Positions 47-42,200 of a DNA stretch of 64,000 nt are shown here, in pieces (position 1 is the stretch's first letter; every line of letters begins with the position of its first letter). Location of the stretch: assembly GCA_965202585.1 (NCBI GenBank), contig OZ241834.1, positions 25,978,001 to 26,042,000 of the forward strand. The letters are read 5' to 3'. The stretch comes from Thalia democratica (taxonomy: Eukaryota). The notes beneath the pieces were generated by a model that searched no databases, was not told the origin of the DNA, and saw only the letters and a program-made list of their open reading frames with translations. The translations under genes were made by a program, and so were the position numbers.

Positions 47-1265
47 ACCATTTGAATAGAACCAGCTGTTCATGTTTACTTAAAGTACAAGAATATAAGC
101 TTAGTACAAATAAGTTCTTATTTGTGTAAATTAAAAACTCATATACTTGAATGAACACACTTTTTTTTTTGTTTCAAATGCTTTATAAACTTGTAACTCG
201 TTATATTGTAGAAAAAGCATTGCATTAGTCTAAAAACAGTAGTAGTGCTTGTAATCAAATGGTTTGTAAAAGATGTTTAACTAACTTGATTTTGTTGTCC
301 GTAAGATTTTTCATCTGAATACTTTTTGTACAAAACACTTGTTTTTATTCATTTGCTGAAGTTCTGTTGAAACATTCAATAAATAAGTGCTTACAAAAAA
401 GTATCATCTTTTTAAACAAAAATGTATATCACTTATAACATGCAAAAACTTAGTTGTAACTTTATTTTAAGTTGTTGTTGATTATTAGTAACACAACCGA
501 GCTTTAACTTTTTAAACGAGTTCTTCTTATCAACTTAACTGCAATTGAAGCCATGTAACACGTTTTAAAAAGTTACGAATACATAAATGAATACAAAAAT
601 GGTTGTTCAAAACAAAAATTACAGATGTGTTTTTCAAGTAAAACAACATATTCCTTCTTTCAAAGCTAACTTCTGTTTAGCATATTCAAGAAACATTTTC
701 AATTCAAAACATAAACACACAAAACAAACCAGCTCATTGGTTGAAACTTGGTAAAACACAAAAAAGTAACTGCTTGTACTTTTTTAAGTAATTTATTATT
801 CTAGTTTTCAAAGTAAAAGGTACTTGTTTTAACTAGATATGAGACAACTTACTGACCTTTAACAACTCTAGTAGTTTGTTGAAAGTTATGTTTCTACATA
901 TCTAAAGTAATCAGGACCACCAGTTGATTTAAGCAGCGACTAATGTCGAGTAAACAGTGTCAAACAAGCTTAAACTAAGCGACAAAAAATGTACAAATTT
1001 ATATCTACATTGTGCGTGTTGGTAAAAATTAACAGTTAGTGTATTTCAATAACTTCTAAATAAACTTTCTAAAACTGAATTTCTCTGTTTTTATTTCTAC
1101 TAGTTAGTTACACTTACTTTATTTTTTGTAGTTCTACTTGACATTTTAAACTACTTTTGATAATGTAGAATAAGTTTTTCTGCTTCACTAGTATTTAAAT
1201 GTTAGGTAAAAATGTTTTTTAGTGGGAATTTTCTTGTTTAACTTATTGTTTAAACAAAACTTATT

Positions 1266-1724
1266 CTAGTTCATTTTACTTTGTAAACTTGTTTTTCAAA
1301 CACTCAATAGATATTTGTTGTTAGTTTAATAAAAAAATCAATCTGTCACTAAATAAAAATTTATGCTTAAATAAGACATTATATTAAATGAGAAGAAAAA
1401 TTTACTTTGCGTTGATACTAGTTCATTTTACTTTGTAAACTTGTTTTTCAAACACTCAATAGATATTTGTTGTTAGTTTAATAAAAAAATCAATCTGTCA
1501 CTAAATAAAAATTTATGCTTAAATAAGACATTATATTAAATGAGAAGAAAAATTTACTTTGCGTTGATACTAGTTCATTTTACTTTGTAAACTTGTTTTT
1601 CAAACACTCAATAGATATTTGTTGTTAGTTTAATAAAAAAATCAATCTGTCACTAAACAAAAATTTATGCTTAAATAAGACATTATATTAAATGAGAAGA
1701 AAAATTTACTTTGCGTTGATACTA
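1266..1724 (+). repeat. 3 x 152-bp direct tandem repeat in the first spacer
   Basis: CTAGTTCATTTTACTTTG... starts at 1266, 1418 and 1570; single copy in other units (e.g. 8825-8979). Confidence 0.95.
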
Positions 1725-6671: not shown

Positions 6672-7052
6672 ATGTCAGGACGTGGTAAAGGATCAAAACT
6701 CAAATCTAAGCCGAAGAGCAGGTCTTCCCGTGCAGGACTGCAGTTTCCAGTCGGTCGCGTGCACCGCCTGTTGCGCACCGGCAACTACAGCCAAAGAGTC
6801 GGAGCTGGTGCTCCAGTTTATCTGGCTGCCGTTCTCGAGTACTTGAGCGCAGAAGTGCTCGAGCTTGCCGGTAACGCTGCTCGTGACAACAAGAAAAGCA
6901 GGATCATTCCTCGCCATTTGCAACTAGCTATTCGCAACGACGAAGAGTTGAACAAACTTCTCGGCGGCGTCACAATTGCTCAAGGTGGTGTTCTTCCAAA
7001 CATCCAGGCAGTACTATTGCCTAAGAAGACCGCTTCAAAAAAGTCAGCCTAA
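6672..7052 (+). CDS. H2A: Histone H2A, 126 aa (start trimmed to MSGRGK)
   Basis: [10 protein letters not shown]...LLPKKT; the ORF-track extension runs through the promoter. Confidence 0.97.
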
Positions 7053-7067
7053 GTTAAAAAAAAACCA

Positions 7068-7083
7068 GGTCCTTTTCAGGACC
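7068..7083 (+). terminator. Histone 3' stem-loop (H2A)
   Basis: GGTCCT TTTC AGGACC. Confidence 0.95.
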
Positions 7084-7157
7084 ACCAAAAATATTTACAA
7101 CAAACGAGAGAATTGTGAAGTGAGAGAAACTAGCTATCGTTCGCGTACGGAACTATG

Positions 7158-7169
7158 CTAATTTGCATA
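7158..7169 (-). promoter_or_regulatory. TATGCAAATTAG (inverted), H2B promoter (all units)
   Basis: CTAATTTGCATA on +. Confidence 0.75.
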
Positions 7170-7180
7170 ATTTTACAGCA

Positions 7181-7186
7181 TATAAA
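7181..7186 (+). promoter_or_regulatory. TATA box, H2B (all units)
   Basis: TATAAA 37 bp before ATG. Confidence 0.8.
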
Positions 7187-7217
7187 CCGGCGCCGAGACA
7201 GAAGTCCACACATCATC

Positions 7218-7577
7218 ATGACAGCAACCAAAGGCGCGAAGAAGTCAGTAGCCAAGACCGCTCCGGTCGACGGCAAGAAGAAGCGAAGGAGGAGGAACAA
7301 AGAAAGCTTTGGCATCTACGTGTACAAAGTTTTGAAGCAAGTGCACCCCGACACCGGAATTTCCAGCAAGGCAATGGGAATCATGAACTCATTTGTCAAC
7401 GACATCTTCGAGCGCATTGCAGCAGAGGCTTCACGTTTGGCTCATTACAACAAAAGATCAACTGTTAGCAGCCGCGAAATTCAAACTGCTGTCAGGCTCT
7501 TGCTCCCCGGCGAGTTGTCAAAGCACGCAGTTTCAGAAGGAACTAAAGCTGTTACCAAATACACCAGCTCAAAATAA
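7218..7577 (+). CDS. H2B: Histone H2B, 119 aa (start trimmed to MTATKG)
   Basis: [26 protein letters not shown]...AVTKYTSSK; ATG 37 bp after TATAAA. Confidence 0.96.
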
Positions 7578-7590
7578 ACGCTAAACAACC

Positions 7591-7606
7591 GGTCCTTTTT
7601 AGGACC
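7591..7606 (+). terminator. Histone 3' stem-loop (H2B)
   Basis: GGTCCT TTTT AGGACC. Confidence 0.95.
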
Positions 7607-10290
7607 ACCATTTGAATAGAACCAGCTGTTCATGTTTACTTAAAGTACAAGAATATAAGCTTAGTACAAATAAGTTCTTATTTGTGTAAATTAAAAACTC
7701 ATATACTTGAATGAACACACTTTTTTTTTGTTTCAAATGCTTTATAAACTTGTAACTCGTTATATTGTAGAAAAAGCATTGCATTAGTCTAAAAACAGTA
7801 GTAGTGCTTGTAATCAAATGGTTTGTAAAAGATGTTTAACTAACTTGATTTTGTTGTCCGTAAGATTTTTCATCTGAATACTTTTTGTACAAAACACTTG
7901 TTTTTATTCATTTGCTGAAGTTCTGTTGAAACATTCAATAAATAAGTGCTTACAAAAAAGTATCATCTTTTTAAACAAAAATGTATATCACTTATAACAT
8001 GCAAAAACTTAGTTGTAACTTTATTTTAAGTTGTTGTTGATTATTAGTAACACAACCGAGCTTTAACTTTTTAAACGAGTTCTTCTTATCAACTTAACTG
8101 CAATTGAAGCCATGTAACACGTTTTAAAAAGTTACGAATACATAAATGAATACAAAAATGGTTGTTCAAAACAAAAATTACAGATGTGTTTTTCAAGTAA
8201 AACAACATATTCCTTCTTTCAAAGCTAACTTCTGTTTAGCATATTCAAGAAACATTTTCAATTCAAAACATAAACACACAAAACAAACCAGCTCATTGGT
8301 TGAAACTTGGTAAAACACAAAAAAGTAACTGCTTGTACTTTTTTAAGTAATTTATTATTCTAGTTTTCAAAGTAAAAGGTACTTGTTTTAACTAGATATG
8401 AGACAACTTACTGACCTTTAACAACTCTAGTAGTTTGTTGAAAGTTATGTTTCTACATATCTAAAGTAATCAGGACCACCAGTTGATTTAAGCAGCGACT
8501 AATGTCGAGTAAACAGTGTCAAACAAGCTTAAACTAAGCGACAAAAAATGTACAAATTTATATCTACATTGTGCGTGTTGGTAAAAATTAACAGTTAGTG
8601 TATTTCAATAACTTCTAAATAAACTTTCTAAAACTGAATTTCTCTGTTTTTATTTCTACTAGTTAGTTACACTTACTTTATTTTTTGTAGTTCTACTTGA
8701 CATTTTAAACTACTTTTGATAATGTAGAATAAGTTTTTCTGCTTCACTAGTATTTAAATGTTAGGTAAAAATGTTTTTTAATGGGAATTTTCTTGTTTAA
8801 CTTATTGTTTAAACAAAACTTATTCTAGTTCATTTTACTTTGTAAACTTGTTTTTCAAACACTCAATACATATTTGTTGTTAGTTTAATAAAAAAATCAA
8901 TCTGTCACTAACTAAAAATTTATGCTTAAATAAGACATTATATTAAATGAGAAGAAAAATTTACTTTGCGTTGATACTAAAAATGCTCAATGATATTTGT
9001 TTAAGGTCTGATTGTCAAATAAGTATTAGTTTTATTTATCAGAATGCAAATGAAACAATAAAAAACTGTTTAAAAGTTGAACAGTCAAACTAATGTAGAC
9101 AACAGTGATTGTTTAAAACAAACATACAATTGAAATAATCTTTCTGCTTACAAAGCTCATACTTGTTTTGTTGAACTCATTTTTTCTGTGGCTATGACAA
9201 ATTACAAAATGATTCCACGGTAAAAAAGAACAGCTTGTTACAATTTTTTGTAACTCTTTTTTAAACTATGTATGAGACAACTCAAAACGACGATACTTGT
9301 TTGTTTTAAGCTATGTACTTTTTAAATCTAAAGATTAGGTGGATCACCAATTAATTACACAAGCTACTAATGACTACTAAACTCAACAACACAAATAAAC
9401 ATACTTAATCAACTTTGTGGTGATAAAGAATCAAAAACATATTTCCTTCCAAATTATAAAGCCCATTATTTATTAAATACCTAGCTTGCCAAATTTCTCT
9501 ACTATACTTTTTTTATGCAACTGTTAAGAAGGGAACTCTAGCTAGATAACTGCTCTAATCCTTACTTTATTGCTTACTATTATCGAATGCTTAGTGAAAA
9601 GCTTTAACTAACTTGAGTGTCTTTTTCGTGGCTTTTTTCCTTTTAACTTTCTTTTCCAAATAAAACTTATTCTCATTAACTTTGTGGACATTTTTTAATT
9701 CAATATTTCATTTGTTTTTTAGTTTATTAAAAAAATACTGTGCCTACGTCACTGTAAAAACTATTTGTATTTTTCAATGAAAATAGTACGCTTAAACAGA
9801 AATAAAAATAAAACTTTGACTTATTAACTGAAAACGTTTTAAACTGTTAATAACAAACAATGTTTAGTGTCCTTAAAAAATGCTGTTCAATTACAATTAA
9901 ACTACAACTGAAACATGCTTAACAATTCAAAACTGGTGTAACACATAAATGTAAACAACATCGATTGTTCAAAAGAAAGAGAACACTATTAACAAGTACA
10001 CAATTTACAAAACAAAATACCTTAATAAAATGATGAACTTGTATAAACAAATCTTTTATTTTACAAAGCTTACATCTACTTACTTGATTTAAGCTTTCTA
10101 ATCTTGTCAAGCATATGAAATAAACCAATTGATTAGCTAAAACATGGTACAAAGAAAAGAAGCAAAAAACTTGTTACCACTTGTTTGTTACCCTTATGTA
10201 CGCTATACATAAGTAAACTGAAATTACTGTAACTTGTTGCTTTAAGCTGTGTAGTTTTTATAAATCTAAAGAAGAAGAAAAAACTGGACA
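7602..10290 (+). repeat. Degenerate ~870-bp tandem monomers in the spacer (present in every unit)
   Basis: Landmarks recur at ~850-940 bp: GGAYCACCA 7602/8473/9341; ATCTAAAG 8459/9326/10264; TATGAGACAACT 8397/9271; AAAACTTATTCT 8815/9662. Confidence 0.75.
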
Positions 10291-12107
10291 AAGCGAAACC
10301 AAAACTTTTTTTAGCCTTCATTTTTTTACAGCTTATTATGTGATGGTACAAGTTCCATAATAGGCAAACAACAATGTAAAACTTTGAATCAAGCAAATAC
10401 TTTGTTTTATATGGTCTATAATTGAATAAGATAACAGTTACTTTGTTTCAAGTTTATATGTTATTGCTACAACAGCTATGTTCTTAACGACATCCGAGAA
10501 TAAAATGTAACTTATCCTAAGCTGTGTTTTTAACTACATTAACAGTAAGCTAGAGATAACTAGTTACGAATTTTGAAAAGCAAACATTTAGTCAATGAAA
10601 TCAATGGTACAGAACATTATGATTAATCTAGGTTGAGTAAACTAAGAAATCACTATTAGCAGTAAAGCAGTTAAAACACATGTTTAACTTGGTAAGCACT
10701 TCAATCGTAAACTTTAAAAGACAGTACTGTTGTTGTTTCAAAATATGTTTCAAGAAAGTAGTAAGTTGTTCTATGTTGTTTCGACTGACTTTAAAACTTT
10801 ATGAGAAGTGACAAAACAAAGTTTGAAAAAAAAACTTACTTGCATTATTTTCCAGTTAAAAAGTTTCAAAGATAGATTGAAAGGTTATGAGTGCTGATTG
10901 TAAACAAAGCTTTATTCAAACACTAAGTTTGTCAATCTTATTTCTAAACTTTTTCATTTAGATTTTCTTACTCGATTTTATTTTGTATATAATGCTGCTT
11001 AAAAAATAAACCAACCTCTTTTTTTACGTAAAATTTTTCATCCAAAAGGTATCAGCTTTTGTTTAAGTTCAAATTTAGTGCTAGTGTTCATAAGCTTTTT
11101 CGACTTATTTACTTCTTTGAATTTAATTAACTTTATTTTGTTTGGAAAATTTACAACCAAATCCATTTGTTCACTTTTATCAGCACACTTTATTCGGTTG
11201 AAATCTGCAAAGTTAAAGTTCTTAGTTTGATCAAGGTTTAAGTTTAACGAGCAAAATTGCATCAGTTATTTTTTAAACTGTATAACAGCTTCAATCAGTT
11301 GTTTGAAACACTAATTGAATGTTAAACTACTTATCTTTTAAACTAGTTTTTCATACACACTGAAAAATAAAGTTTGTGTTTAAATGTAGTTTACAACTTT
11401 AAACAAGTATCATCATAGTTACTGTACAGCACGTTTTTGAAAGGTTGTTTGGAAAACATTGTTGTAAGGTAAGTTACTAGTATGTGCAACAACAAAGCTA
11501 TCTAGTTGTCTGTTTAATAAAAGTTTTGAGTACATTGCTTATGAGTAATCATAAGCAGTAAAGCTAAAAAAAATGAACACTTTTATTCTTTTGGAATTAC
11601 TTTTTACACATTAGTTTAAACTGTAATTAACTTGAACATACTTGATAGAACTTACGATTAACAAAACTCCATGAAATCGATATAATGAAATTTTGTTTAA
11701 GGTAAAAAAAAACCTTGTGCTTTGTTAAAACTTTATTACTTTAGGTGAGCGGCAAAGGAAAACTCAGTCGGGAGTGTGTTAACATGTTTTGTTTCATTTA
11801 TGTTTTTCTTAATGTATTTAGAGGTGTGCTGTAAGATACAGGCTGTTATTTCTGGACTTTTCAAACTAATGCTTTAAAAAAATTACTTTTAGAACAAGTT
11901 AAATATGGTTTCTTTCTTACTGGAACTTTTTCAACATTCTTAATAAGACAACTAAGTTTTTATAAGCATATATGTCTTAAACAAACATGCTAATGCTTAT
12001 ATTAAGAAGTAAAAGGTACCTTGCAAAGCATAACTGCTCAACAGTCAATTCGTCACAGTCAGTAACTCTTGCAAGTATCGTTTTGGTCGCTTTAATATTC
12101 ATTCATC

Positions 12108-12662
12108 ATGTCTACCACAGCAGTAGCAGCAGTACCAGCGCCAGCCAGGTCTTCCAAGAGACCAAGCGCCAAGAAGGCAGAGCACCCTACTTACAGGGAA
12201 ATGATTAGCTCTGCCCTTGGAGCAATGAAGGAACGAAAAGGTACATCCCGCCAGAAGATACAAAAGTATATCGCGGACACCTACAAGCTTGACCTCACAG
12301 CTTCCAATTCTCACTTGAAGAGAGCACTTACCAGCGGCGTGACCAAAGGTGCTTTTCTCCAGACAACTGGAAAAGGCGCTTCTGGCTCGTTCAAGCTTGC
12401 TCCAATGCCAGCTGCTGGGCCCAAGAAGAGGACAAAGAAAGTAGCTAAAAAGCCAGCAGCAAAGAAGGCCCCAGCTAAAAAACCAAAAAAGAAGTGTGCT
12501 CCCAAGAAGGCTGCAAAAAAACCAGCAGCCAAAAAGCGACCTGCTAAAAAGTGCGCTCCTAAGAAGGCAGCATCTAAAAAAGCTGCAAGCAAGAAGAAGA
12601 AAGTAACCAAGAAGAAGCCGGCAGCCAAAAAAGCATCCAAGAAGAAGAGCTGTAAAAAATAA
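12108..12662 (+). CDS. H1: Histone H1, 184 aa (family B)
   Basis: As 4827 but with a 2-aa deletion, F>Y and A>P. Confidence 0.96.
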   Translation: MSTTAVAAVPAPARSSKRPSAKKAEHPTYREMISSALGAMKERKGTSRQKIQKYIADTYKLDLTASNSHLKRALTSGVTKGAFLQTTGKGASGSFKLAPMPAAGPKKRTKKVAKKPAAKKAPAKKPKKKCAPKKAAKKPAAKKRPAKKCAPKKAASKKAASKKKKVTKKKPAAKKASKKKSCKK

Positions 12663-36626: not shown

Positions 36627-38980
36627 ACCATTTGAATAGAACCAGCTGTTCATGTTTACTTAAAGTACAAGAATATAAGCTTAGTACAAATAAATTCTTA
36701 TTTGTGTAAATTAAAAACTCATATACTTGAATGAACACACTTTTTTTTTGTTTCAAATACTTTATAAACTTGTAACTCGTTATATTGTAGAAAAAGCATT
36801 GCATTAGTCTAAAAACAGTAGTAGTGCTTGTAATCAAATGGTTTGTAAAAGATGTTTAACTAACTTGATTTTGTTGTCCGTAAGATTTTTCATCTGAATA
36901 CTTTTTGTACAAAACACTTGTTTTTATTCATTTGCTGAAGTTCTGTTGAAACATTCAATAAATAAGTGCTTACAAAAAAGTATCATCTTTTTAAACAAAA
37001 ATGTATATCACTTATAACATGCAAAAACTTAGTTGTAACTTTATTTTAAGTTGTTGTTGATTATTAGTAACACAACCGAGCTTTAACTTTTTAAACGAGT
37101 TCTTCTTATCAACTTAACTGCAATTGAAGCCATGTAACACGTTTTAAAAAGTTACGAATACATAAATGAATACAAAAATGGTTGTTCAAAACAAAAAATT
37201 ACAGATGTGTTTTCAAGTAAAACAACATATTCCTTCTTTCAAAGCTAACTTCTGTTTAGCATATTCAAGAAACATTTTCAATTCAAAACATAAACACACA
37301 AAACAAACCAGCTCATTGGTTGAAACTTGGTAAAACACAAAAAAGTAGCTGCTTGTACTTTTTTAAGTAATTTATTATTCTAGTTTTCAAAGTAAAAGGT
37401 ACTTGTTTTAACTAGATATGAGACAACTTACTGACCTTTAACAACTCTAGTAGTTTGTTGAAAGTTATGTTTCTACATATCTAAAGTAATCAGGACCACC
37501 AGTTGATTTAAGCAGCTACTAATGTCGAGTAAACAGTGTCAAACAAGCTTAAACTAAGCGACAAAAAATGTACAAATTTATATCTACATTGTGCGTGTTG
37601 GTAAAAAGTAACAGTTAGTGTATTTCAATAACTTCTAAATAAACTTTCTAAAACTGAATTTCTCTGTTTTTATTTCTACTAGTTAGTTACACTTACTTCA
37701 GTTTTTGTAGTTCTACTTGACATTTTAAACTACTTTTGATAATGTAGAATAAGTTTTTCTGCTTCACTAGTATTTAAATGTTAGGTAAAAATGTTTTTTA
37801 ATGGGAATTTTCTTGTTTAACTTATTGTTTAAACAAAACTTATTCTAGTTCATTTTACTTTGTAAACTTGTTTTTCAAACACTCAATACATATTTGTTGT
37901 TAGTTTAATAAAAAAATCAATCTGTCACTAACTAAAAATTTATGCTTAAATAAGACATTATATTAAATGAGAAGAAAAATTTACTTTGCGTTGATACTAA
38001 AAATGCTCAATGATATTTGTTTAAGGTCTGATTGTCAAATAAGTATTAGTTTTATTTATCAGAATGCAAATGAAACAATAAAAAACTGTTTAAAAGTTGA
38101 ACAGTCAAACTAATGTAGACAACAGTGATTGTTTAAAACAAACATACAATTGAAATAATCTTTCTGCTTACAAAGCTCATACTTGTTTTGTTGAACTCAT
38201 TTTTTCTGTGGCTATGACAAATTACAAAATGATTCCACGGTAAAAAAGAACAGCTTGTTACAATTTTTTGTAACTCTTTTTTAAACTATGTATGAGACAA
38301 CTCAAAACGACGATACTTGTTTGTTTTAAGCTATGTACTTTTTAAATCTAAAGATTAGGTGGATCACCAATTAATTACACAAGCTACTAATGACTACTAA
38401 ACTCAACAACACAAATAAACATACTTAATCAACTTTGTGGTGATAAAGAATCAAAAACATATTTCCTTCCAAATTATAAAGCCCATTATTTATTAAATAC
38501 CTAGCTTGCCAAATTTCTCTACTATACTTTTTTTATGCAACTGTTAAGAAGGGAACTCTAGCTAGATAACTGCTCTAATCCTTACTTTATTGCTTACTAT
38601 TATCGAATGCTTAGTGAAAAGCTTTAACTAACTTGAGTGTCTTTTTCGTGGCTTTTTTCCTTTTAACTTTCTTTTCCAAATAAAACTTATTCTCATTAAC
38701 TTTGTGGACATTTTTTAATTCAATATTTCATTTGTTTTTTAGTTTATTAAAAAAATACTGTGCCTACGTCACTGTAAAAACTATTTGTATTTTTCAATGA
38801 AAATAGTACGCTTAAACAGAAATAAAAATAAAACTTTGACTTATTAACTGAAAACGTTTTAAACTGTTAATAACAAACAATGTTTAGTGTCCTTAAAAAA
38901 TGCTGTTCAATTACAATTAAACTACAACTGAAACATGCTTAACAATTCAAAACTGGTGTAACACATAAATGTAAACAACA

Positions 38981-39180
38981 NNNNNNNNNNNNNNNNNNNN
39001 NNNNNNNNNNNNNNNNNNNNNNNNNNNNNNNNNNNNNNNNNNNNNNNNNNNNNNNNNNNNNNNNNNNNNNNNNNNNNNNNNNNNNNNNNNNNNNNNNNNN
39101 NNNNNNNNNNNNNNNNNNNNNNNNNNNNNNNNNNNNNNNNNNNNNNNNNNNNNNNNNNNNNNNNNNNNNNNNNNNNNNNN
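38981..39180. other. Assembly gap (200 N)
   Basis: Run of exactly 200 N; a round placeholder, true size unknown. Confidence 0.99.
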
Positions 39181-39299: not shown

Positions 39300-42200
39300 G
39301 ATGAATGAATAATAAAGCGACCAAAACGATACTTGCAAGAGTTACTGACTGTGACGAATTGACTGTCGAGCAGTTATGCTTTGCAAGGTACCTTTTACTT
39401 CTTAGCATTTTTGCATTAGCATGTTTGTTTAACACATATATGCTTATAAAAACTTAGTTGTCTTATTACGAATGTTGAAAAAGTTCCAGTAAGAAAGAAA
39501 CCATATCTAACTTGTTCTAAAAGTAATTTTTTTTAAAGCATTAGTTTGAAAAGTCCAGAAATAACAGCCTGTATCTTACAGCACACCTCTAAATACATTA
39601 AGAAAAACATAAATGAAACAAAACATGTTAACACACTCCCGACTGAGTTTTCCTTTGCCGCTCACCTAAAGTAATAAAGTTTTAACAAAGCACAAGGTTT
39701 TTTTTTACCTCAAACTTAAACAAAGTTTCATTATATCGATTTCATGGAGTTTTGTTAATCGTAAGTTCTATCAAGTATGTTCAAGTTAATTACAGTTTAA
39801 ACTAATGTGTAAAAAGTAATTTCAAAAGAATAAAAGAGTTCATTTTGTTTAGCTTTACTAGTTATGATTACTCATAATCAATATACTCATAAGCAATGTA
39901 CTCAAAACTTTTATTAAACAGACAACTAGATAACTTTGTTCTTGCACATACTAGTAACTTACCTTACAACAATGTTTTCCAAACAACCTTTCAAAAACGT
40001 ACTGTACAGTAACTATGATGATACTTGTTTGAAAGTTGTAAACTACGTTTAAACACAAATTTTATTTTCCAGTGTATATGAAAAACTAGTTTAACAGGTA
40101 AGTAGTTTAACATTCAATTGGTGTTTCAAACAACTGATTCAAGCTGTTATACAGTTTAAAAAATAACTGATGCGATTTTGCTCGTTAAACTTAAACCTTG
40201 ATCAAACTAAGAACTTTAACTTTGCAGATTTCAACCGAATAAAGTGTGCTGATAAAAGTGAACAAATGGATTTGGTTGTAAATTTTTCAAACAAAATAAA
40301 GTTAATTAAATTCAAAGAAGTAAATAAGTCGAAAAAGCTTATGAACACTAGCACTAAATTTGAACTTAAACAAAAGCTGATATCTTTTGGATGAAAAATT
40401 TTACGTAAAAAAAGAGGTTGGTTTATTTTTTAAGCAGCATTATATACAAAATAAAATCGAGTAAGAAAATCGAAATGAAAAAGTTTTGAAGTAAAATTGA
40501 CAAACTTAGTGTTTGAATAAAGCTTTGTTTACAATCAGCACTCATAACCTTTCAATCTATCTTTGAAACTTTTTAACTGGAAAATAATGCAACTAGGTTT
40601 TTTTTTCAAACTTTGTTTTGTCACTTCTCATAAAGTTTTAAAGTCAGTCGAAACAACATAGATACTGACACATATTTTGAAACAACAACAGTACTGTTTT
40701 TTAAAGTTTACGATTGAAGTGTTTACCAAGTTAAACATGTGTTTTAACTGCTTTACTGCTAATAGTAATTTCCTAGTTTACTCAACCTAGATTAATCATA
40801 ATGTTCTGTACCATTGATTTCATTGACTAAATGTTTTGCTTTTCGAAATTCGTAACTAGTTATCTCTAACTTACTGTTAATGTAGTTAAAAACACAGCTT
40901 AGGATAAGTTACATTTTATTCTCGGATGTCGTTAAGAACATAGCTGTTGTAGCAATAACATATAAACTTGAAGCAAAGTAACTGTTATCTTATTCAATTA
41001 TAGACCATATAAAACAAAGTATTTGCTTGATTCAAAGTTTTACATTGTAGTTTGCCTATTATGGAACTTGTACTGTCACATAATAGGCTGTAAAAAAATG
41101 AAGGCTAAAAAAGTTTTTGTCTTGCTTTGTCCAATTTTTCTTCTTCTTTACATTTATAAAAACTACACAGCTTAAAGCAACAAGTTACAGTAATTTTGCT
41201 TTCTTATGTATAGCGTACTTAAGGGTAACAAACAAGTGGTAACAAGTTTTTTACTTCTTTTCTTTGTACCATGTTTCAGCTAATCAATTGGTTTATTTCA
41301 TATGCTTGACAAGATTAGAAAGCTTAAATCAAGTAAGTAGATGTAAGCTTTGTAAAATAAAAGATTTATTTATACAAGTTCATCATTTTATTAAGGTATT
41401 TTGTTTTGTAAATTGCGTACTTGTTAATAGCGTTCTCTTTCTTTTGAACAAACGATGTTGTTTACATTTATGTGTTACACCAGTTTTGAATTGTTAAGCA
41501 TGTTTCAGTTGTAGTTTAATTGTAATTGAACAGTATTTTTTAAGGACACTAAACATTGTTTGTTATTAACAGTTTAAAACGTTTTCAGTTAATAAGTCAA
41601 AGTTTTATTTCTGTTTAAGCGTACTATTTTCATTGAAAAATAAAAATAGTTTTTACAGTGACGTAGGCACAGTTTTTTTTAATAAACTAAAAAACAAATG
41701 AAATATTGAATTAAAAAATGTCCACAAAGTAAGCATGAATAAGAATAAGTTTTATTTGGAAAAGAAAGTTAAAAGGAAAAAGGCCACGAAAAAGACACTC
41801 AAGTTAGTTAAAGCTTTTCACTAAGCATTCGACAATAGTAAGCAATAAAGTAAGGATTAGAGCAGTTATCTAGCTAGAGTTCCTTTCTTAACAGTTGCAT
41901 AAAAAAAGTACAGTAGAGAAATTGTAGCGAGCTAGGTATTTAATAAATAATGGGTTTATAGTTTGGAGGGAAATTGTTTTTTGATTCTTTTTCACCACAA
42001 AGTTGATTAAGTGTGTGTATTTGTGTTGTTGAGTTTAGTAGTCATTAGTAGCTTGTGTATTTAATTGGTGATCCACCTAATCTTTAGATTCAAAAAGTAC
42101 ATAGCTTAAAACAAACAAGTATCGTCGTTTTGAGTTGTCTCATACATAGTTTAAAAAAGAGTTACAAAAAATGGTAACAAGCTGTTCCATTTTTACCTTG

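Follow-up and report, generated by a model that had tools for sequence, protein, structure and literature searches.

The spacer behind the H2B gene in the tandem histone units of Thalia democratica is very AT-rich and looks empty, which raises the question of what it is made of and how it grew. It is described here for a window of 64,000 nucleotides (contig OZ241834.1), whose positions are used throughout. Its beginning is, with a probability of roughly 85%, the remnant of an old tandem amplification that is now homogenised at the level of whole units, the hairpin relics in it being fossils and a few short islands perhaps in use.

Tandem subrepeats fill the first part of the spacer. Three complete monomers (M1, M2 and M3, Table 1) follow each other head to tail between 7602 and 10274, and every monomer opens with the H2B hairpin's loop and 3' arm, succeeded by the H2B 3' flank; the head of M1 is the loop and 3' arm of the H2B stem-loop itself. 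Phase is constant, with the same head and tail motif at each junction: the tail ATCTAAAG precedes a GGACCACCA-type head at 8459-8481 and 9326-9349, stands alone at the end of M3, and also closes monomers in relatives. GGACCACCA is found at 7602 and 8473, 871 bp apart, TCAGGACCACCA at 8470, and GGATCACCA 868 bp further on at 9341. Additional paired landmarks are TATGAGACAACT (8397/9271), AAAACTTATTCT (8815/9662), AATGTARACAACA (9092/9948) and two tails of 39-40 nt (9295/10232); in family B, monomers 2 and 3 both contain AGCTACTAATG. All landmarks and coordinates given in the initial annotation, including the 871 and 868 bp spacing of the stem-loop remnants, proved exact.

Table 1. Features of the histone-unit spacer (positions in the window)
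Feature	Position	Strand	Remarks
Genuine H2B 3' stem-loop and downstream flank	7586..7630	+	Rfam RF00032, 30.1 bits, E 1.6e-5
Monomer M1, 871 bp	7602..8472	+	directly behind the H2B gene; profile match hmm 2-909, E 3e-171
24-nt island CTAACTTGA-N5-TTGTCCGTAA in M1	7840..7863	+	weaker paralogue in M3 starts at 9608
Monomer tail motif ATCTAAAG	8459..8466 (end of M1), 9326-9333 (M2), 10264-10271 (M3)	+	invariant in the three-way alignment
M2 stem-loop relic TCAGGACCACCA (loop end, 3' arm, ACCA), then H2B-type flank	8470..8481	+	without 5' arm
Monomer M2, 868 bp	8473..9340	+	profile match hmm 6-910
M3 stem-loop relic GGATCACCA	9341..9349	+	homologous column block in the three-way alignment
Monomer M3, 934 bp	9341..10274	+	profile match hmm 5-912, E 2e-208; tail adjoins the non-repeated distal spacer
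TACGTCAC island in M3	9745..9752	+	only ACGTCA in the unit
Non-repeated distal spacer and H1 upstream region	10275..12107	+	outside the subrepeat array

Adjacent copies share their orientation, and their similarity exceeds composition-matched chance. Where 1.1 matching 10-mers would be expected at lags of 871-901, 13 are observed (z 9), and weaker peaks lie at about twice and three times that distance. Smith-Waterman scores, set against 60 dinucleotide shuffles, are 33 versus 19.2 for M1-M2 (z 6.2), 42 versus 18.3 for M1-M3 (z 12.2) and 53 versus 19.0 for M2-M3 (z 16.4). Sensitive blastn aligns 8382-9122 with 9256-9978 at 60.6% over 794 columns (E 4e-19), and a profile built on the three copies re-finds them end to end (7591-8466, 8466-9334 and 9333-10274). 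Autocorrelation and local alignment, the latter 6-16 standard deviations above dinucleotide shuffles, thus both bear out the period first proposed for this spacer. Global-alignment identities of the monomers were set aside, being gap-inflated to the point that shuffles reach 60%.

A chance or low-complexity effect of DNA with 27% G+C, or the insertion of an unrelated satellite or transposon, could in principle produce such a periodicity, and would suit both the AT-richness of the spacer and the fact that Tandem Repeats Finder sees nothing at the monomer period. The program cannot detect an array of this kind, whose period is above 500 bp and whose copies are too dissimilar. Scores far above dinucleotide-preserving shuffles, together with profile matches of the same monomers in other array families and taxa (E 1e-40 to 1e-200), refute this explanation; moreover, the head of every copy is the H2B flank itself and, among the matches listed, spacer and 24-nt island sit at unit-length spacing in histone arrays. 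We regard it as hardly credible.

The count of monomers had initially been put at three or more plus part of a fourth. Three complete copies stand, but the window holds no partial fourth, and the landmark at 10232 once taken to indicate it belongs to the tail of M3. Between 10275 and 12100, a fourth or fifth monomer was found neither with the M1-M3 profile (best score -0.5, whereas shuffles reach 7.2) nor by Smith-Waterman comparison with 200 shuffles (p 0.055-0.89), and a richer profile of 24 monomers likewise gave no match there. A blastn match of 8637-8780 with 11255-11393, accompanied by a k-mer peak at a lag of about 2620, fails the shuffle control (p 0.055). Positions 10324-12200 align to the unique part of units on contig C8, behind their M5 and 5S gene, and 11612-12036 is conserved with the distant relative L025. 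Searches of the unit with Rfam (E<=1) and ARAGORN returned five stem-loops and no hidden RNA genes, Rfam finding no 5S gene in the window's own array family, and no hidden open reading frame exceeds 87 aa.

The five genic stem-loops are also the only ones called by Rfam at E<=1; neither spacer relic is among them. The true H2B stem-loop has a GGTCCT/AGGACC stem, a 4-nt loop, ACCA and a downstream flank, and folds at -10.1 kcal/mol (6-bp stem, 4-nt loop, z -3.8). The M2 relic does not fold (-0.3 kcal/mol), and the M3 relic forms a weak, non-canonical 4-bp hairpin (-4.3 kcal/mol) that 36 of 200 shuffles equal or beat. Both relics therefore lack the 6-bp stem, 4-nt loop and covariance score of a histone 3' stem-loop, and the earlier claim that remnants without an intact 5' arm cannot fold as stem-loops holds. 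The 5' arm is absent from every extra copy in all array families. AGGACCACCA occurs exactly in the M2 relic and nowhere else in each unit spacer (34 matches in the window against 1.1 expected). In L017/L032 this relic reads GGACAACTA or GGACAACCA, and it is missing in the L013, L015 and L034 types. Sister families have mutated or lost their hairpin relics, which marks these as non-functional fossils. A search with a U7 snRNA model, meant to probe the relic flanks for a retained pairing site, gave no match in the genome, but control genomes were equally silent.

At the junctions in M2, M4 and copies d and e of L023, AAATCTAAAG is joined through T(A/T)ATC to AGGACCACCA, as against GGTCCT-TTTC-AGGACC in true stem-loops. 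The exact breakpoint within the hairpin, as read from these decayed junctions, is uncertain. The relic flanks read ATTGATTTAACCAGC(TACTAATG), and the true H2B flank of the distant relative L025/L026, GGACCACCA-ATTGATTTAAACCAGC, agrees with them through ...CCAGC. They match this flank better than does the present H2B flank of their own species.

A hairpin half with an H2B-type flank at the start of every copy, and a monomer length in the range of a gene plus spacer, might suggest that the monomers are decayed H2B pseudogene units (gene and 3' flank) and the spacer a row of dead histone genes. Smith-Waterman comparison with the 2.8 kb genic part is, however, no better than with shuffles, and tblastn with five histones gives a best E of 0.86, so that the monomers do not qualify as histone pseudogenes. 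M1, which is pure 3' spacer, aligns to M2 and M3 head to tail along its whole length, leaving no room for a gene in the block, and the 5' arm is missing from each additional copy in every family. Such an origin is very improbable and, for lack of nucleotide or translated similarity to histone genes, was rejected.

The amplified spacer block is repeated at two levels, as had been proposed. Among the five intact units of family A, spacer identity is 99.7-99.8%; the family B spacer is 96% identical to that of family A. Monomers within one unit share 47-56% over profile columns 14-470, and monomer-to-monomer identity is about 50-60%. Near-identical units thus hold diverged monomers that are orthologous by position, as in a higher-order repeat, and not mutually homogenised subrepeats of the rDNA type. 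The monomer region changes about as fast as the remaining spacer (0.56-0.84 identity to L023).

In the monomer tree, a copy groups with those in the same position in other array families and related taxa, not with its neighbours in the unit, with support of 100% for M1, 98% for M2 and 100% for M3. M4 branches outside the M2 clade (99) and M5 outside M2+M4 (96). Clustering by position implies that the duplications are older than the splits among array families and related plankton, and that the copies were not mutually homogenised; the amplification to at least five copies is older than both splits. The related sequences are metagenome contigs, in which labels as species or as paralogous arrays are uncertain. 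Within the same genome, other histone array families carry about two, three or five monomers. The window, L035 and L036 give profile matches equivalent to three monomers, L032/L033 to five, L023 to five or more, and L013/L024 and L034/L037 to about two; L013/L024, L015 and L034/L037 have lost M2 in part or altogether. On contig C8, the units with five copies include a 5S rRNA gene as well, located behind M5 and antisense to the histone genes. Homology of the distant relative's own 777-bp repeats to M2 and M3 is not supported, the two weak in-phase island matches (E 0.01-0.03) being within the reach of shuffles.

The first 2.7 kb of the spacer is accordingly, most probably, what is left of a tandemly amplified block of about 0.87 kb, which is likely to have run from the hairpin apex at the H2B 3' end (loop, 3' arm, ACCA, flank) to ...AAATCTAAAG. 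Neither the coding region of H2B nor the 5' arm was ever inside the block, so that extra copies start with half a hairpin and should be unable to bind the stem-loop machinery. The array grew to five or more copies (M1-M5) ahead of the divergence of today's array families and of related plankton taxa. From the topology of the tree, the family in the window most likely kept M1-M3 and lost M4 and M5, acquisition of these copies by exchange with a diverged array being the alternative. Copies in a unit have since diverged independently to their present identity, while whole 7.26-kb units were presumably held 99.7% alike by unequal exchange or conversion at unit level, giving a higher-order-repeat hierarchy with genes inside. 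The initial annotation had suggested ancient serial duplication of a block bounded by a stem-loop, followed by decay. Its growth and decay agree with the position-wise tree and the relic flanks; beyond the supposed fourth copy, it was too simple in that the ancestor had at least five copies and the present family has fewer.

Compared with the sequence around them, several short islands change slowly, which makes some function possible. No array family departs from the 24-nt island in M1, and even the distant relative L025/L026, where the flanks no longer align, shows it almost unchanged. It has 125 matches in the genome against none for the reversed control, and among 100 of these 125 matches listed all lie at unit-length spacing in arrays. 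Versions with up to three mismatches persist in M4, M5 and L023 d/e, the island of L025 M1 scores z 11.7 against M3 of the window, and M2 has lost it. TACGTCAC is kept in M3, M4 and M5 as well as in M1 of L025, differs by one base in L023 d, has degenerated in M2 and is gone from M1 of the window. Sites invariant among the three paralogues are better conserved in orthologues (77 versus 68%, p 3e-5), and columns conserved in the other monomer clades mismatch less between orthologues in the clade under test (23.6 versus 35.9%). Such a pattern of slower sites could stem from uneven mutation rates, patchy conversion or alignment bias of the HMM. The choice between leftovers and functional elements, initially left open, thus falls differently for different parts: the hairpin relics are leftovers, and a few other islands are mildly constrained and may be cis-acting sites.

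On the amplification itself there is no disagreement with a second reading, according to which the copies persist because they are used. The subrepeats would be a selectively kept array of cis-modules with one set per monomer (CTAACTTGA-N5-TTGTCCGTAR, TACGTCAC and AATGTAAACAACA..GATTGTTCAAAAC), serving like rDNA spacer repeats as enhancers, insulators, RNA polymerase II pause or termination elements, or nucleation elements of the locus body. The invariance of the 24-nt island, its survival in M4, M5 and L023 d/e and the slower orthologous sites speak for it, as would the presence of spacer sequence in contigs of two metatranscriptome libraries. Against it, M2 is without the 24-nt island and was itself partly or wholly deleted in several amplified families, copy number varies from two to five or more, the monomers diverge on average as much between orthologues as the remaining spacer does, and the slow sites have the other possible sources named above. 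Nor are the island motifs repeated in the histone promoters, which share ATGCAAATTAG instead; the monomers show no similarity to the genic and promoter region and hence are not promoter copies of the rDNA type. An octamer at 9044 in M2 matches ATGCAAAT of the promoters without the TAG extension, for which the chance is about even by a base-composition estimate. The RNA-library contigs, which in the two runs cover most of the spacer at low depth, are indistinguishable from DNA carry-over of a high-copy array, a possible source for them. Overall, selective maintenance of the array appears unlikely, if worth keeping in mind; that conserved modules (the 24-nt site, TACGTCAC and a small inverted repeat per monomer) organise termination, insulation or histone-locus-body assembly is slightly more doubtful still.

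A decayed amplification under unit-level homogenisation resembles alpha satellite, in which diverged monomers stand in fixed order in a larger homogenised unit and cluster by position, not by unit. The two-level hierarchy is the same, but the large histone unit carries five expressed histone genes, and its spacer monomers are 0.87-0.93 kb long, number only 2-5, make up part of the spacer and are far more diverged (about 50-60% identity). Subrepeats of rDNA intergenic spacers, such as the 60/81-bp enhancer repeats and spacer promoters of Xenopus and the 240-bp repeats of Drosophila, are short promoter-side duplications of known function that are kept mutually similar. Here, too, the spacer of a tandem gene array is enlarged by internal duplication of a gene-flanking control region, with copy number differing between units and species. 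The histone monomers differ in duplicating the 3' processing side of an RNA polymerase II gene, with half of the signal, in not being mutually homogenised and in matching no promoter of the unit. With the tandem quintets of sea urchin, Drosophila and grasshopper the unit shares the same quintet, one strand, a length of several kb and length variants due to spacer indels. According to passages of the review PMC13525598, invertebrate histone units measure 3.7-13 kb, same-strand arrays occur in echinoderms and grasshoppers, and linkage of histone and 5S rRNA genes is known in Artemia and Mytilus galloprovincialis. The five-monomer families on C8 with their 5S gene in the spacer are comparable to the latter two, whereas the window's own family is without it and the C8 gene lies antisense behind M5. 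The passages of that source, and literature searches, mention no spacer subrepeat derived from a histone 3' end, an absence that is no proof of novelty.

The locus offers a natural experiment in concerted evolution, in which units are 99.7% alike and the nested 0.9-kb repeats have drifted yet remain orthologous by position; this combination indicates that homogenisation operates over whole units rather than through short internal homology. For spacer growth it provides a concrete history of an 'empty' spacer, with a hairpin-forming RNA signal marking the edge of the original duplication. Monomer copy number (two, three or five) and the 5S gene, present in some families and absent from others, are markers for tracing the birth and death of histone array families, within the genome and in plankton relatives. 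If the array of cis-modules were real, it would be for the histone locus what spacer enhancer repeats are for rDNA, and would have started with a break at the H2B hairpin. The slowly evolving islands are candidate control elements of the histone locus in a non-model animal, and cheap to test.

Histone quintet units in tandem make up the window, at C10:25978001-26042000 of an 801-Mb eukaryote assembly; H1, H3, H4, H2A and H2B are all on the same strand, and a 4.5 kb spacer of 27% G+C follows them. The unit is 7255 bp long. Intact family-A units lie on the + strand and their spacers are 99.7-99.8% identical; family-B units are inverted, lie beyond an assembly gap and are 96% identical to family A. 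The gap, a run of 200 N at 38981-39180, was left as is. The array orientation flips across it, family A (+) stopping mid-spacer at 38980 and family B (-) beginning at 39307, and the junction itself falls within the gap. The first unit carries three tandem copies of a ~152-158-bp segment equivalent to window 8822-8979 in the second spacer monomer (M2); they lie at window 1262-1724 and lengthen that spacer by ~280 bp, and two further places on C10 have this variant.

The spacer downstream of H2B begins with three monomers, M1-M3. The initial annotation had reported that the 3' arm of the H2B stem-loop recurs at 871- and 868-bp spacing, with further landmarks, one of them shared by M2 and M3 of family B; its strings and coordinates are all exact. 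The predicted periodicity is present, with 13 10-mer matches at lags of 871-901 compared with 1.1 in dinucleotide shuffles (z 9) and weaker peaks near two and three times this lag. Local alignments of the monomers score 33, 42 and 53 (z 6.2, 12.2 and 16.4), against ~19 (SD ~2) for shuffles. Sensitive blastn aligns 8382-9122 with 9256-9978 (60.6%, E 4e-19) and 9201-9334 with 10132-10272 (70%), and M1 segments also align to M2 and M3. A profile HMM built from the three-way alignment recovers three abutting full-length copies (7591-8466, 8466-9334 and 9333-10274). Of the three monomers and part of a fourth proposed at first, the three stand and the fourth does not, since the landmark at 10232 is the tail of M3 and matches those of M1 and M2. 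With two profiles and with Smith-Waterman, the last 1.8 kb of spacer gave no monomer signal. A contig from run X8, which carries another organism label, skips 887 bp of this non-repeated distal spacer (window 10340-11228); 4 nt are shared at the deletion joint, and the skip has about monomer length in a region without detectable monomer homology.

Table. Coordinates of spacer monomers, conserved island, 5S rRNA genes and histone arrays
Feature	Location	Remark
M1	window 7602-8472	
M2	window 8473-9340	
M3	window 9341-10274	
Clearest island, CTAACTTGA-N5-TTGTCCGTAA	window 7840-7863	in M1
5S rRNA gene	L032:5094-5203 (+ in locus orientation); L033:4728-4838 (-)	Rfam 68-72 bits; gathering score 38
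5S-bearing arrays, 9.9-kb and 8.8-kb units	C8:46.2-46.3 Mb and 46.99-47.15 Mb	
Array loci	C7 31.36-31.41 Mb; C8 46.2, 47.0, 54.4 Mb; C10 25.63-26.06 Mb; C167; C342	

Each monomer is headed by the loop end and 3' arm of the hairpin plus ACCA, followed by a flank of H2B type, and ends in ...AAATCTAAAG. The motif AGGACCACCA is found exactly once in the spacer of each unit (34 matches in the window, 1.1 expected). Across families the junction reads AAATCTAAAG + T(A/T)ATC + AGGACCACCA, and true stem-loops read GGTCCT-TTTC-AGGACC; from these decayed junctions we infer that the duplicated block probably began near the boundary between 5' arm and loop. The flanks of the relics, i.e. the half-hairpins heading M2 and M3, read ATTGATTTAACCAGC(TACTAATG). 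In a distant relative, whose H1 is 77% identical, the genuine H2B flank GGACCACCA-ATTGATTTAAACCAGC matches them through ...CCAGC, so that the relics keep the ancestral H2B flank better than the present flank of the species does. Rfam calls five genic stem-loops and none in the spacer, and the relics fall outside the histone stem-loop family. Folding energy is -10.1 kcal/mol for the true H2B hairpin; for the relics it is -0.3 and -4.3 kcal/mol, values that shuffles match, which bears out the earlier statement that they cannot fold as stem-loops. The M2 relic is GGACAACTA or GGACAACCA in L017 and L032 and has lost its first G in the metagenome contig L023, and three families lack it by deletion; the hairpin relics are therefore leftovers. 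The monomers were also considered as dead histone genes. This reading is rejected: they resemble no histone gene at either the nucleotide or the translated level, and M1, itself plain 3' spacer, aligns head to tail with M2 and M3. No ORFs above 87 aa, tRNA genes or other Rfam families were found.

Identical H2B proteins and close H1 relatives were found by protein look-up only in marine plankton metagenome contigs, and H2B and H1 look-up recovered such contigs with identical gene order. In the genome, an island pattern search revealed several array families on C7, C8, C10 and C167, with units of ~6.6, 7.17-7.26, 8.8 and 9.9 kb, and a DNA search with the spacer added further units on C342. The families differ chiefly in subrepeat number, as counted by profile annotation of representative units. 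Three monomers are present in the window family, L035 and L036; M1, a partial M2 and M3 in L034/L037 and in the metagenome type L013/L024, with out-of-register deletions of 642 bp and ~1020 bp; five (M1-M5) in the C8 families L032/L033; and at least five in L023, two of them 84% alike and thus products of a later duplication. In the C8 units a 5S rRNA gene follows M5, ahead of the unique spacer, and runs antisense to the histone genes; it is absent from the window family and the other families examined. Window 10324-12200 aligns to the C8 sequence behind this gene, and M3 therefore directly abuts the unique spacer in the window family. Further joints are seen in contigs from other runs: 1023, 463 and 877 bp are skipped, and one joint steps back by 1695 bp, from late in M3 to where M2 starts. 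These mostly out-of-register changes fit monomers too diverged for homologous unequal exchange.

The distant relative (L025, a 7085-bp full unit, and L026) has the same gene order and a recognisably homologous M1, the only monomer recognised by the profile (E 7e-27); two weak in-phase matches to the central island are at a level that shuffles can reach. L025 has spacer repeats of its own, with lags of 777 and 885 bp and 64-76% identity (offsets 707-2060 from L025:5900), for which no tie to M2/M3 could be established.

In a maximum-likelihood tree of 25 monomers (profile columns 14-470) the copies group by position (M1 100%, M2 98%, M3 100%), each clade holding the window family and the C8 families, together with L017, L023 and L024 where these are available. 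M4 branches outside the M2 clade (99%) and M5 outside M2+M4 (96%), a pattern also given by FastTree. Wherever the root is placed, neither M4 nor M5 nests within the M2 orthologues; these two are therefore older than the divergence of the families, whose ancestor carried at least five copies. Most likely the window family lost M4-M5, their gain by exchange with a diverged array being the lesser possibility. Summed branch lengths are ~0.9 substitutions/site among M1-M3 and ~0.34 between window and C8 or L023 orthologues. The two-level hierarchy of the initial annotation, with homogenised units and internal copies that are not, is upheld, and its account of ancient duplication of a stem-loop-bounded block followed by decay is essentially right.

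Whether the persisting islands are leftovers or functional had been left open. Window and L023 are 0.56-0.84 identical per 100-bp bin in the monomers, similarly in the unique spacer, and 0.95-1.0 in most coding bins; average monomer rates appear neutral. The monomers have decayed unevenly. Where all three paralogues agree, 77% of sites are conserved in the orthologue, compared with 68% at the remaining aligned sites (p 3e-5). By a non-circular test, columns that are conserved in other monomer clades show 23.6% orthologue mismatch in the tested clade versus 35.9%, a gap that profile alignment may inflate, and 17.5 versus 30.5% at A/T sites only. The 24-nt island at 7840-7863 stands out most clearly. 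It is invariant in M1 of all families and nearly so in the distant relative, persists with up to 3 mismatches in M4, M5 and the individual L023 copies d/e, and is gone from M2. It has 125 genome matches (0 for the reversed control), and among the 100 listed all lie at unit-length spacing in arrays. Other conserved blocks are TACGTCAC, AATGTAAACAACA..GATTGTTCAAAAC and TTACAAAGCT, none of which recurs in the histone promoters; ATGCAAATTAG, consisting of an octamer with a TAG extension, is instead common to all four core-histone promoters (window 5477, 6091 and 6584 on +, 7161 on -). A lone octamer without the TAG extension lies in M2 at 9044, about chance level. In two marine metatranscriptome libraries (X19, X20), contigs with variants 85-99% alike, aligned to window 7000-12200, cover most of the spacer at a depth similar to or above that of the H2B gene, which could reflect spacer transcription or DNA carry-over of the high-copy array. 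A mostly fossil array with a few possibly used islands ranks well above a maintained functional array; that the conserved islands are working parts is given a minority chance.

Higher-order repeats likewise combine diverged monomers in fixed order with a homogenised large unit, and rDNA spacer subrepeats are similar in mode of origin. In contrast to functional subrepeats of the rDNA type, the monomers show neither promoter similarity nor mutual homogenisation. A recent review of histone gene organisation in >250 species (PMC13525598) describes units of 3.7-13 kb, same-strand arrays and 5S linkage. No spacer subrepeat originating from a histone 3' end is mentioned in those of its passages that matched a term search, nor in the literature searched, a silence that is weak evidence of novelty. 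The subrepeat array is real, well defined and very old, with clear origin and phase; its novelty is modest, as a variant of known spacer-subrepeat and higher-order-repeat organisation.
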